Shown here one piece after another: positions 9,120 through 27,518 of a DNA stretch of 64,000 nucleotides. The notes below the pieces were generated by a model that was not told the DNA's origin, did no database searches, and saw nothing but the letters and a program-made list of their open reading frames with translations. The stretch lies in contig NIVC01000482.1 of the NCBI GenBank assembly GCA_002269645.1, forward strand, positions 62,001 through 126,000, given 5' to 3'. Source of the DNA: Macrostomum lignano. Taxonomy: Eukaryota. Within the stretch, counting starts at the first letter, position 1, and each line of letters begins with the position of its first letter. The translations under genes and the position numbers were made by a program.

Positions 9120-12100
9120 TTAAGTAGGACTGCGGGAATGTCTGCGGTGCTTGCGAGATCCCCAAGAGACATTTTGAATTGTTAAATCCGGCTCACTGCC
9201 TGGGGGAAGCCTGTAAAATGTAATTAAAACTTCAAAACTTATTGATAATTTAGGCTTTAAGATGAAGGCACAATGAATTTAAAAAATAAGGTAAGTCATA
9301 GATGACGATGAGTCATGAGGAATAGATGAGTCATAGACGAGGCATAGATGAGTCATAGACGAGGCATAGATGAGTCATAGACGAGGCATAGATGAGTCAT
9401 AGACGAGGCATAGATGAGTCATAGACGAGGCATAGATGAGTCATAGACGAGGCATAGATGAGTCATAGACGAGGCATAGATGAGTCATAGACGAGGCATA
9501 GATGAGTCATAGACGAGGCATAGATGAGTCATAGACGAGGCATAGATGAGTCATAGACGAGGCATAGATGAGTCATAGACGAGGCATAGATGAGTCATAG
9601 ACGAGGCATAAATGAGTCATACACGAGGCATAGATGAGTCATAGACGGGGCATAGATGAGTCATAGACGAGGCATATATGAGACATAAAGTTAGCGAGGT
9701 ATAGATGAGTCATAGATGAGTCATGGATGAGTCATAGACGAAGCATACATAAGTCATAGACAAGGCATAGATGAGTCATAAACGTGGCATAGATTAGTCA
9801 TAGACGAGGCATAGATGAGTCATAAACGAGGCATAGATGAGTCATAGATGAGGCATAGATGAGTCATAGATGAGCATAGATGAGTCATAGATGAGCATAG
9901 ATGAGTCATAGATCATAGCTACCTGAATGGTGCCAGCGGTCTGAAAAGCACCAGCAGAATGAACCTCTGAAAATTGATCTGACAAGTTCCCTGAAATTTT
10001 GAACAACGTTTTCTTCAATACTTTCCTAATTCTTCCCTCATACTACTCAGAAATCTTGTTTTATAAGTAGAGTGAAACGCACCTTGTACAAACAGGTGAG
10101 ACCAGCATTTAAAGAGAAGCATCGAGCTACTCGAGTCCAAAATTGCTGAGCAACTCGAAGATTCGAAGCTCGAGCGGAGATGAGCAGCGAGGGTAGCGTC
10201 TGCGGGTTGGGATGCGAGCGAGCTTAAAATTCACGCTGAAGTTAGTGGCATTCTGTCAACCCGTCACTCTGTCAACCCGTCACTCTGTCAACCCGTCACT
10301 CTGTCAACCCGTCACTCTGTCAACCCGTCACTCTGTCAACCCGTCACTCTGTCAACCCGTCACTCTGTCAACCCGTCACTCTGTCAACCCGTCACTCTGT
10401 CAACCCGTCACTCTGTCAACCCGTCACTCTGTCAACCCGTCACTCTGTCAACCCGTCACTCTGTCAACCCGTCACTCTGTCAACCCGTCACTCTGTCAAC
10501 CCGTCACTCTGTCAACCCGTCACTCTGTCAACCCGTCACTCTGTCAACCCGTCACTTTGTCAACCCGTCACTTTGTCAACCCGTCACTTTGTCAACCCGT
10601 CACTTTGTCAACCCGTCACTCTGTCAACATGTCACTCTGTCAACATGTCACTCTGTCAACATGTCACTCTGTCAACATGTCACTCTGTCAACATGTCACT
10701 CTGTCAACATGTCACTCTGTCAACATGTCACTCTGTCAACATGTCACTCTGTCAACATGTCACTCTGTCAACATGTCACTCTGTCAACATGTCACTCTGT
10801 CAACATGTCACTCTGTCAACATGTCACTCTGTCAACATGTCACTCTGTCAACATGTCACTCTGTCAACATGTCACTCTGTCAACATGTCACTCTGTCAAC
10901 ATGTCACTCTGTCAACATGTCACTCTGTCAACATGTCACTCTGTCAACATGTCACTCTGTCAACATGTCACTCTGTCAACATGTCACTCTGTCAACATGT
11001 CACTCTGTCAACATGTCACTCTGTCAACATGTCACTCTGTCAACATGTCACTCTGTCAACATGTCACTCTGTCAACATGTCACTCTGTCAACATGTCACT
11101 CTGTCAACATGTCACTCTGTCAACATGTCACTCTGTCAACATGTCACTCTGTTAACCGTCGTCAACTCAAAAAGCCAGTTAGAGCTCACGGAATTGACAG
11201 TCCGGGACGCCAAAGAAGTGGCTGCCAGGACAGCTGACTGGCATCCCCGCGCAAAATGGGAGTTGAATCCCACCGAACTGTCAATCAGGCCTTGAAGTCG
11301 GCTGTCATAATTAGAGTGGGCTTCTCTGAAACAGTCATAAAACAAGGAATAACAAGTCATAGAGGGATACAAAATCTAGTCATCAAAAAGAATTCAATAG
11401 AGGCTTTCCATTATCTGGTCATAGAGAGTGGCATTATATAGACATAGAGGGACGACTTTACCAGGTCATAGAGGGGATGACAGTATCCGGTCATAGAGGA
11501 AATGACAGTATCCAGTCATAGAGAGGTGACAGTATCTGGTCATAGAGGGGGATGACAGTATCTGGTCATAGAGGGGGATGACAGTATCCGGTCATTGACA
11601 GGGATGACAGTATCCGGTCATAGAGGGGGTGACAGTATCCGGTCATAGAGGGGATGACAGTATCCGGTCATGGAGGGGATGACAGTATCCGGTCATCGAG
11701 GGGATGACAGTATCCGGTCATCGAGGGGATGACAGTATCCGGTCATCGAGGGGATGACAGTATCGGGACAACAGCGGTTTCTCACTCGTCAATGCAGAAG
11801 CTGGCACTCTCAGTACGATAAGCCGGCCTCAACCTGTCAATCAGCCTCAAAGACTGGCTGTAGACAAACGCCCGGCTGAGAGCAGGTCGCAGGCAGTAGC
11901 GCCGCGGGCCCATGACTCTGCCAAGCCAGGAGGCCAAGTCAATTGGCTGTGGGGTTCACGCAAAATTAGCAGTTCGTTGATGCTTTGGAAATTAAAAATT
12001 CATGGCAAATATTTTCGAACCCGAATCTTCACCAACCCGAATGTTCACCAACCCGAATCTTCACCAACCTGAATCTTCACAAATTCGATTCTTCACCAAC

Positions 12101-27100: not shown

Positions 27101-27518
27101 GACGCTTGTTAGCCTGATATCCGCTAAGAGTGACACTTTCTAACCTGACATCCGCTAAGAGTGACACTTGCTAACCTGACATCCGCTAAGAGTGACGCTT
27201 GCTAACCTGACATCCGCTAAGAGTGACGCTTGCCAGCCTGACATCGCAACTAGCGAATACCACGTCAGCAGTCCGGGATCTCCCCACTATTAAACGTATC
27301 ATTAGTCTAACAGAATAAACTTCCAGTAGAAACCTTACCTTGGTCGGCCGGCCAGGTCTCAGGGAACCGCAGACAATACGCGATATAATAAATCGTTGCA
27401 TATTCATCAGCTTGGAAACAGAACTTCTTGGACTTGATGGATTGTCTGGTGACAGACGGCTGCTAAGACAAAATTTATACATGCGTAAAGCTGCCCCCAT
27501 CTCCCTATTAGATCCCAT
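9120..27518 (-). CDS. POMGnT1-like GT13 family type II membrane protein, 17 exons, ~690 aa; catalytic motifs degenerate
   Basis: Exons (minus strand): 27339-27518 (start codon uncertain), 25655-25778, 18745-18920, 18288-18341, 18111-18209, 15944-16082, 15684-15770, 15305-15435, 14516-14586, 14190-14382, 13168-13299, 12339-12461, 11786-11946, 11190-11325, 10083-10199, 9923-9990, 9120-9210. All GT-AG and phases chain without a stop. Collinear with POMGnT1: [20 protein letters not shown]; stem GLHMFIVNQ and GRLLI; [18 protein letters not shown]; [31 protein letters not shown]; WTRVARCF. Confidence 0.88.
9295..9915. repeat. 22-bp minisatellite containing ATGAGTCAT
   Basis: GACGAGGCATAGATGAGTCATA units filling intron 9211-9922. 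Confidence 0.95.
10252..11150. repeat. 16-bp minisatellite with an internal monomer switch
   Basis: CTGTCAACCCGTCACT to ~10620, then CTGTCAACATGTCACT. Confidence 0.97.
11460..11765. repeat. 25-bp minisatellite
   Basis: GTCATAGAGGGGATGACAGTATCCG units; degenerate copies from ~11330. Confidence 0.9.
12015..12320. repeat. 16-bp minisatellite
   Basis: AACCCGAATCTTCACC units. Confidence 0.9.
12530..12985. repeat. (CTAA)n microsatellite
   Basis: Direct reading. Confidence 0.97.
13690..14175. repeat. 33-bp minisatellite
   Basis: AGACACAAAACACTACAGAAGACACACTATGAA units, ending ~15 bp from the splice donor at 14189. Confidence 0.95.
14650..15260. repeat. 22-bp minisatellite
   Basis: CAGAATCTTCACAAACTATAAA units. 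Confidence 0.95.
16185..16445. repeat. 32-bp minisatellite containing ATGACTCAT
   Basis: GTCTAGAGTGTACATATTCTATGACTCATCGG units. Confidence 0.9.
17099..17550. repeat. (GACA)n microsatellite
   Basis: Direct reading. Confidence 0.97.
18365..18715. repeat. 35-bp minisatellite
   Basis: GAGATTTCCGAGCACTCATTCACGCCATTCTTAAT units filling intron 18342-18744. Confidence 0.95.
18960..20050. repeat. 20-bp minisatellite (~54 copies)
   Basis: CCAGTGTTCTATCAGTCTGT units. Confidence 0.97.
20460..21220. repeat. Complex GA-rich polypurine satellite
   Basis: GGGAGAGAGGGAGAGGAGA-type units. Confidence 0.95.
21850..22075. repeat. 40-bp minisatellite
   Basis: TTGTTGTAGCAAAAAATACCGATATGTAGCGTAAAGCACT-type units. 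Confidence 0.9.
22670..23390. repeat. 11-bp polypurine minisatellite
   Basis: GATGAGGGAGA units. Confidence 0.96.
26880..27245. repeat. 31-bp minisatellite
   Basis: GCTAGCCTGACATCCGCTAAGAGTGACACTT units. A separate 4-copy GGATCTGGGAGG repeat lies at ~26005-26130. Confidence 0.92.

Follow-up and report, generated by a model that had tools for sequence, protein, structure and literature searches.

Can a glycosyltransferase give up its chemistry and still be retained as a folded and expressed protein? The question is raised by a gene of Macrostomum lignano (a free-living flatworm), located in a 64,000-nucleotide stretch of contig NIVC01000482.1 (assembly GCA_002269645.1). This whole stretch is referred to as the window, and all coordinates are positions in it. 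The gene is related to POMGnT1 and runs on the minus strand from an ATG at 27518 to the last base of a TAA stop at 9120. An initial annotation, made from the DNA letters without database searches, had described it as an intact paralogue of POMGnT1 with replaced catalytic residues. Our analysis confirms the gene and suggests that it is transcribed, and that it is probably kept by selection as a pseudoenzyme of glycosyltransferase family GT13. Judged from its sequence, the encoded protein most likely cannot transfer N-acetylglucosamine (GlcNAc) to O-mannose and acts without catalysis.

Fold and donor site of a POMGnT1 relative

A phmmer search of PDB sequences matched the protein to human POMGnT1 (5GGF) with an E-value of 1.4e-53, in an alignment that begins in the stem domain and ends shortly after the catalytic centre, and to MGAT1 with an E-value of 5e-16. 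The GT13 profile of Pfam, GNT-I (PF03071), scored 57.3 bits against a cut-off of 25.4. The same profile is assigned to a deposited protein, here P0001 (GenBank PAA88898.1, UniProt A0A267GSA8, 655 amino acids, 'hypothetical protein BOX15_Mlig001922g5 [Macrostomum lignano]'), which is 98–99% identical to the window protein. An AlphaFold model of P0001, with 51 homologues in its alignment, reached a mean predicted local distance difference test (pLDDT) of 84.8 and a predicted template modelling score (pTM) of 0.82. The top match of this model in Foldseek was full-length human POMGnT1 (E-value 1e-46, template modelling (TM) score 0.86 over 561 columns), followed by MGAT1 (TM 0.75), the isolated stem domain 5GGJ (TM 0.82), and then FAM3B/FAM3C. 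The modelled fold is that of full-length POMGnT1, in line with the preserved scaffold that the initial annotation had proposed.

By profile and predicted structure, the protein is a POMGnT1-derived type II membrane protein of CAZy family GT13. A short basic cytoplasmic tail and one membrane anchor are followed by a FAM3-like stem, a Cys-rich linker, a GT-A domain and the POMGnT1 C-terminal domain. The type II anchor after a basic tail, with a FAM3-like stem ahead of the GT-A domain, is the arrangement of the POMGnT1 subfamily. Human POMGnT1 (PDB 5GGF, 5GGI) has the same domain order, the conserved cysteines, AWNDQ, and the E and D of the DxD motif, but the Macrostomum protein is only about 29% identical to it overall and 33% in the catalytic core. 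MGAT1, also called GnT-I (GT13; PDB 1FOA, 2AM3), shares the GT-A catalytic domain and the Pfam GNT-I match, but it lacks the stem domain and is the weaker match of the two.

What has become of the active site within this fold? With P0001 as query, HMMER was run over 1.84 billion representative proteins and returned 1294 relatives, of which the best 150 were listed; the best full-length ones are only 31–37% identical to P0001. The window protein, P0001 and 90 relatives were aligned, with residues numbered as in human POMGnT1. Residue roles in MGAT1 were taken from two reviews (PMC7014118, PMC7948508), and the stem residues from the paper on FAMP-1, a POMGnT1-related protein of Caenorhabditis elegans (PMC9802357). 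The functional motifs are near-uniform in the 90 relatives: N-R311-P, x-D338-G, H371-Y, E393-[E/D]-D395, AWND, P-G-L-G450-W451, W475-D476-M-W and S-R-x-x-H500-F-G. At these places the Macrostomum protein reads S-N-Q-P, L-R-G, L-Y, E-G-D, AWND, P-L-K-A-V, L-A-S-W and S-R-A-F-V-Y. It is an outlier at R311, D338, H371, E394, G450/W451, W475, D476 and H500, positions at which few relatives are also degenerate. Relative to the human enzyme the substitutions are R311Q, D338R, H371L, E394G, PGLGW to PLKAV, W475L, D476A and H500V. The human motifs given in the initial annotation agree with the PDB and library sequences; the loss of the nucleotide-binding H371, which is a Leu in LANLY, had escaped it.

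The replaced positions cover much of what is known to hold and use the donor. In MGAT1, the uracil of the donor is contacted by an Asp. The alpha-phosphate is held by a conserved Arg, nucleotide and ribose are in contact with a His, and a glycine-rich loop faces the donor; W290 binds O4 of the sugar, and D291, the equivalent of POMGnT1 D476, is the base (PMC7014118, PMC7948508). The contacts to uridine diphosphate (UDP) are absent from the Macrostomum protein, with R311Q, D338R, H371L and the PLKAV loop in their places. Where the base is expected, at the start of helix alpha10 and preceded by a Trp, the protein has Leu-Ala, although an Asp lies two residues upstream. The base-carrying helix starts at L469 in the model of P0001 and at W475 in that of a mammalian POMGnT1, and these two residues are aligned; the favoured register therefore puts Ala470 of P0001 at the position of Asp476. 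The replacement of the base by Ala in IDLASW, as claimed initially, is supported by both the POMGnT1 alignment and this helix register.

Two of the changes first listed as losses carry less weight. The third residue of the DxD motif binds the metal and the first binds O3/O4 of GlcNAc (PMC7014118, PMC7948508). In the E-G-D of the Macrostomum protein both are kept, so that the supposed loss of the metal motif comes down to the middle acidic residue, which all other aligned members have. Similarly, the change of SRSYHFG to SRAFVYS does remove His500, but this is weak evidence alone, because active MGAT1 lacks the C-terminal metal-binding His (PMC7948508, PMC7014118).

The family alignment also supports the view that the losses concentrate at the active site. 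Forty-four columns are at least 85% conserved in the 90 relatives. The Macrostomum protein keeps 29 of them, among which are seven of seven cysteines, a number of charged residues and structural Gly, Pro, Leu and Phe. R311, D338, G450, W451, W475, D476 and H500 are among the 15 that it has lost. As a clear homologue of an enzyme family without residues essential for catalysis, it would on sequence grounds qualify as a pseudoenzyme. The predicted fold and the disulfide cysteines have been kept, and the UDP-GlcNAc pocket has been rebuilt. The phosphate-binding Arg has given way to Gln, the uracil-binding Asp to Arg, the ribose-side His to Leu and the C-terminal metal-binding His to Val, the glycine-rich loop is filled with Leu, Lys, Ala and Val, and Leu-Ala stands in place of the Trp-Asp pair, by which the sugar is held and the acceptor deprotonated. 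With a pocket rebuilt in this way, the transfer of GlcNAc to O-mannose has most likely been lost. Judged from the alignment and the models, it is very unlikely that the protein binds UDP-GlcNAc or carries out base catalysis in the canonical way.

The same site can be read as that of a working but diverged GT13 enzyme, which retains a metal-diphosphate site, uses the Asp of PIDLASW as base and perhaps takes another nucleotide sugar or acceptor. E393 and D395 are indeed kept, together with the equivalents of D401, D416, N426, R442, R488 and R497. In the phmmer alignment with MGAT1, the Asp of PIDLASW (D468 of P0001, two residues before the lost base) stands opposite the catalytic D291, with a two-residue insertion after it. 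These observations speak against a complete loss of catalysis and leave room for a residual or altered activity. An active enzyme can also do without the C-terminal His, as MGAT1 does, and a comparison of the two known copies shows the gene to be most conserved in its catalytic-domain exons. Against this, at least six independent donor contacts have changed at once, among them the uracil site, where the charge is reversed (D to R), and the glycine loop with its bulky residues, at positions that the 90 relatives keep from unicellular holozoans to mammals, bar the few that are also degenerate. The helix register in two AlphaFold models, moreover, puts Ala and not Asp at the position of the base. 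We therefore regard a surviving enzyme as improbable and favour a protein without catalysis.

A non-catalytic function is not easily assigned to the stem. The sugar-binding residues of the POMGnT1 stem domain are R129, D179 and R207 (PMC9802357). In the Macrostomum protein this triad reads Q/D/K, where D179 is less certain owing to an insertion in the alignment. The altered triad puts the lectin function of the stem in doubt and so weakens the most obvious non-catalytic role, a point that also counts against a maintained pseudoenzyme.

Transcription and probable maintenance of the gene

Is such a gene expressed and maintained, or is it a decaying copy? P0001 is encoded at a second locus, L001, on contig NIVC01000172.1 of the same assembly. 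Both places share the gene order Snf7/CHMP6, GNT-I gene and amino-acid permease, L001 carries the same 32 splice sites as the window gene, and the exons of the two are 95–100% identical. The window holds either the locus of L001 as it stands in a different assembly or haplotype, or a copy that arose by duplication. The GenBank annotation of the L001 assembly was based solely on RNA sequencing and de novo transcript assemblies, with TransDecoder used to call open reading frames and with novel transcripts dropped where their support was weak (PMC5730564). As the annotation is drawn from transcripts only, the 17-exon chain is the transcript structure of the L001 copy and not an ab initio guess, and a spliced mRNA exists. 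The exon chain proposed from the DNA letters is in this way confirmed by a transcript-derived model of a near-identical copy.

The divergence of the protein is far from recent. The catalytic cores of canonical POMGnT1 proteins, from mammals to the unicellular Capsaspora, are 53–68% identical to each other, whereas the Macrostomum protein is 31–38% identical to all of them. The gap in identity is widest in the catalytic and C-terminal domains and narrower in the stem. From Poisson-corrected identities we estimate the excess divergence at about 0.2 substitutions per nucleotide. Neutral change of about 0.2 per site would, with the codons of this gene, be predicted to create some 13 stops, and none is observed; the probability of finding none is about 1e-6, even before frameshifts and splice losses are counted. 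The frame therefore seems to have been protected for long, after or while the active site was rewritten.

A second line of evidence comes from the comparison of the two copies. Their coding sequences, counted from Met38 as the probable start, differ at 14 of 1968 nucleotides (0.71%), and the 200-nucleotide intron flanks of all exons at 170 of 6372 (2.7%, with a median flank of about 1.75%; Fisher p 2e-8). Exons 9–17, which encode the catalytic and C-terminal domains, differ at two of 1092 nucleotides (0.18%) and their own flanks at 91 of 3400 (2.7%; Fisher p 5e-9), while exons 1–8 from Met38 differ at 12 of 876 (1.4%). Exons hence diverge 4- to 15-fold less than the flanking introns. The coding sequence contains a single indel of exactly one codon, compared with 15 gap events in the intron flanks. 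We interpret this as constraint at the level of the exons, strongest on the 'dead' catalytic domain. Gene conversion as the cause of the exon conservation was considered and rejected, as introns within 200 nucleotides of the same exons differ by 2.7%.

These results have to be weighed against a simpler explanation, a redundant gene drifting to loss: a transcribed but functionless copy in a recently polyploid genome, whose frame has not yet been hit. A number of observations point in this direction and count against a maintained pseudoenzyme. The ratio of non-synonymous to synonymous divergence (dN/dS) between the copies is 0.85, from four synonymous and ten non-synonymous changes. This is near the value of 1 that the initial annotation had associated with a recent pseudogene; it gives no support for selection and does not reject neutrality, yet with 14 changes in two copies it is underpowered rather than contradictory. 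In the N-terminal half, nine of 12 changes are non-synonymous, with a dN/dS of about 1; this half has diverged by 1.4%, no less than about half the 2.7% of its own intron flanks (Fisher p 0.03). Introns, moreover, are more diverged than synonymous sites, and exon conservation may therefore partly act at a level other than the protein. Neutral rates of the neighbours are uneven, with a synonymous divergence of about 7.5% in the permease gene and one change in 642 nucleotides in CHMP6. The transcript evidence belongs to the L001 copy and not to that of the window, and the AlphaFold model, which draws on an alignment of canonical relatives, speaks for compatibility with the fold and is not an independent proof of it. 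Among the best 150 of the 1294 matches there is no orthologue outside Macrostomum; the only other close matches listed, P0010 and P0151, are fragmentary predictions from an older M. lignano assembly. Furthermore, the catalytic site and the lectin triad of the stem are both altered, and M. lignano, a neopolyploid, carries extensively duplicated sequence (PMC5730564).

Drift to loss nevertheless fits poorly with the extent and pattern of the changes. The protein has diverged much too far from every canonical relative for this to be recent, and neutral change on that scale would have left the expected stops along with frameshifts. Both copies are instead intact, with all 32 splice sites and seven of seven conserved cysteines, and their exons differ far less than the introns next to them. 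Immediately upstream of Met38, 4.5% mismatches and an indel that shifts the frame give an example of unconstrained sequence at this locus. On this evidence we consider a decaying copy unlikely and prefer a gene that has been under selection over long times.

A selected pseudoenzyme need not be a paralogue. The gene could also be the sole POMGnT1 orthologue of Macrostomum, with catalysis lost in the lineage, a history that is compatible with the pseudoenzyme interpretation. No second Macrostomum GT13 protein, canonical POMGnT1 or MGAT1, and indeed no second flatworm protein, was found among the 27 library matches that were checked by name, whose named sources are mites, a bug, a prawn, brine shrimp, an oyster, corals, a hemichordate and unicellular holozoans. 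Nematodes offer a precedent, as they lack POMT1/2 and O-mannosylation and yet keep the POMGnT1-like FAMP-1 (PMC8478517, PMC9802357). On the other hand, only the best 150 of 1294 matches were listed, few of them carrying names, and the word-indexed protein search misses true relatives, for example P0001 despite exact 64-residue stretches in the query. A sole orthologue is a serious possibility, although on balance we doubt it.

Gene model and neighbouring features

The exons were located from the three minus-strand frames and by tblastn with a human POMGnT1 sequence, and the chain was corrected and confirmed against P0001. The resulting gene has 17 exons (Table 1), each intron follows GT-AG, the phases are consistent throughout, and an uninterrupted frame encodes 693 amino acids. 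This rebuilt model reproduces exactly the limits 9120–27518 and the intact in-phase frame of about 690 residues in the initial annotation. The features named there, namely the transmembrane anchor, the cysteines of RRRRFC..C.C, the scaffold motif FCIGAWNDQ, and SNQP, MLRG, EGD, PLKAV, IDLASW and SRAFVYS, could each be located. One candidate exon was rejected. A 120-codon minus-strand open frame in intron 5 (17557–17916) has usable AG/GT sites and could be spliced in phase between exons 5 and 8 as 17886–17661, but it has no clear homology, and P0001 uses 16082–15944 and 15770–15684 instead.

Judging from the sequence of the two copies, translation probably starts at Met38 (27407, MNMQRF), and the first 37 codons would belong to the 5' untranslated region. 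The stretch upstream of Met38 (27408–27518) is open in the window, but a 2-nucleotide indel breaks it in the L001 copy, and the deposited protein likewise begins at MNMQRF; both facts argue for non-coding sequence. A spliced leader could be accepted at a pyrimidine-rich AG near 27460, and the ending 'g5' of the P0001 locus tag suggests that the gene belongs to a multi-gene transcriptional unit. The cytoplasmic tail contains F-I-I-S-R (27378–27392), a candidate match to the (F/L)(L/I/V)xx(R/K) Golgi-retention motif that GOLPH3/Vps74 recognises.

Table 1. Exons of the POMGnT1-like gene and neighbouring features, in window coordinates
Feature	Position	Strand	Content
Exon 1	27339..27518	-	ATG 27518; probable start Met38 27407; basic cytoplasmic tail with F-I-I-S-R 27392-27378
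Exon 2	25655..25778	-	type II membrane anchor, 20 amino acids (25775-25716); AlphaFold helix at P0001 residues 23-46
Exon 3	18745..18920	-	FAM3-like stem domain begins
Exon 4	18288..18341	-	stem domain; TQGLHM, lectin residue R129 to Q
Exon 5	18111..18209	-	stem domain
Exon 6	15944..16082	-	stem domain; recovered via P0001
Exon 7	15684..15770	-	end of stem domain; one-codon in-frame indel against second copy
Exon 8	15305..15435	-	linker bearing conserved cysteines
Exon 9	14516..14586	-	first beta-strand of GT-A domain; SSNQPQF, phosphate-binding R311 to Q
Exon 10	14190..14382	-	uracil-binding D338 to R; SLANLYR, H371 to L
Exon 11	13168..13299	-	LLEGDVD, DxD motif as E-G-D, E393 and D395 kept; FCIGAWNDQ
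Exon 12	12339..12461	-	glycine-rich donor loop PGLGW to PLKAV
Exon 13	11786..11946	-	PIDLASW, W475 to L and catalytic base D476 to A; LSRAFVYS, C-terminal His500 to V
Exon 14	11190..11325	-	C-terminal domain
Exon 15	10083..10199	-	C-terminal domain (FWTRVARCF)
Exon 16	9923..9990	-	C-terminal domain
Exon 17	9120..9210	-	ends in TAA stop, last base 9120
Amino-acid permease gene	~2856..8036	+	SLC7 type; Pfam AA_permease_2 1e-30
CHMP6/Snf7 gene	30968..31609	-	intronless, 213 amino acids, N-terminal MG; Pfam Snf7 6e-36
GC-rich block	54192..56600	both	~55% GC; long overlapping open frames; no Pfam match
Rhodopsin-family receptor gene	62922..63998	+	G-protein-coupled, aminergic type; Pfam 7tm_1 9e-51; open frame runs off window end

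Nearly all introns hold long micro- or minisatellite arrays (9317–27245). There are at least 15 of them, making up about 8 kb of the 18.4-kb gene, for example a 20-mer repeated 55 times (18960–20051), a 16-mer repeated 57 times (10252–11156), (GACA)x113 (17101–17552) and (AACT)x110 (12543–12983). Many of the arrays translate to long spurious open frames on both strands.

The neighbouring genes have diverged to different degrees from the second copy. CHMP6/Snf7 shows a single synonymous change. The permease exons carry no replacements, and their synonymous divergence lies far above that of the two neighbour genes. The GC-rich block further along the window may be a remnant of a transposable element.

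Related proteins and a possible non-catalytic role

What could a POMGnT1 relative do without its chemistry? It would be a type II membrane protein of the Golgi kind, with the POMGnT1 scaffold and no GlcNAc transfer. The initial annotation had suggested a Golgi scaffold, an adaptor in O-mannosyl/dystroglycan glycosylation or a decoy, roles that are conjectural. The protein may also team up with or regulate other glycosylation enzymes of the Golgi, or bind a ligand in the remodelled cleft; this is a guess by analogy, and a rather unlikely one as it stands. A function of the GT-A and C-terminal domains is favoured over one of the stem, because the strongest recent conservation lies in those two domains. 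Catalytically dead paralogues of glycosyltransferases control active ones by chaperoning or inhibiting them, as illustrated by Cosmc (C1GALT1C1) and GnT1IP/MGAT4D. Cosmc, a GT31-like chaperone of T-synthase, and GnT1IP/MGAT4D, an inhibitor of MGAT1, are also type II proteins that have kept the glycosyltransferase fold, lost catalysis and bind an active enzyme. They come from other families, and their likeness to the Macrostomum protein is an analogy of mechanism only. A non-catalytic recruiting role is known for POMGnT1 itself, as the mammalian protein has been called a fukutin-binding 'enzymatic chaperone' (PMC8478517).

The Macrostomum protein is not the only degenerate member of the family. 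P0102, a 'POMGnT1-like' protein of the hemichordate Glandiceps (XP_077982428.1), and P0032, a 666-residue protein from a Logan assembly, also lack the catalytic base and other donor contacts. In the core, the two share only 26–31% identity with the Macrostomum protein and so seem to have lost catalysis independently; several such losses may have occurred in the family. No description of either protein was found in the literature searched. FAMP-1 (M70.4) of C. elegans, compared here by description only, is another invertebrate protein related to POMGnT1. It functions through its FAM3-like sugar-binding domain, its C-terminal domain is barely catalytic-like, and no transferase activity is known (PMC9802357). 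It differs from the Macrostomum protein in its two FAM3-like domains and its minimal similarity to the catalytic domain, whereas the latter has kept a recognisable GT-A domain and altered the lectin triad.

The initial annotation could recall no description of such a protein. The sequence itself is already public under the two accessions given above, but it is uncharacterised; full-text literature searches found no paper that links POMGnT1 to pseudoenzymes or flatworms, and none that calls this protein a pseudoenzyme. Flatworms are not included in a published survey of the enzymes that glycosylate dystroglycan (PMC8478517). We would place the protein with the pseudoenzymes derived from glycosyltransferases. 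The automatic name in UniProt, 'alpha-1,3-mannosyl-glycoprotein 2-beta-N-acetylglucosaminyltransferase', denotes an active enzyme of the MGAT1 type and is probably wrong on both counts, so that the finding flags a probable misannotation.

Taken alone and at the level of sequence, the gene would be a moderately interesting, lineage-specific curiosity. It is quite possible, if somewhat short of probable, that it represents more: an old GT13 pseudoenzyme, selectively kept in Macrostomum, whose remodelled cleft has taken on a novel Golgi role in binding or regulation, with similar independent losses of catalysis in the hemichordate P0102, the Logan protein P0032 and FAMP-1. If this is true, non-catalytic proteins derived from POMGnT1 form a recurrent and so far unrecognised class. 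M. lignano is a suitable system to explore them, as RNA interference and transgenesis are routine in this animal. A natural relative of POMGnT1 that has shed catalysis and kept the fold would offer a clean way to tell what this muscular-dystrophy enzyme does as a scaffold and by binding apart from what it does by its chemistry.

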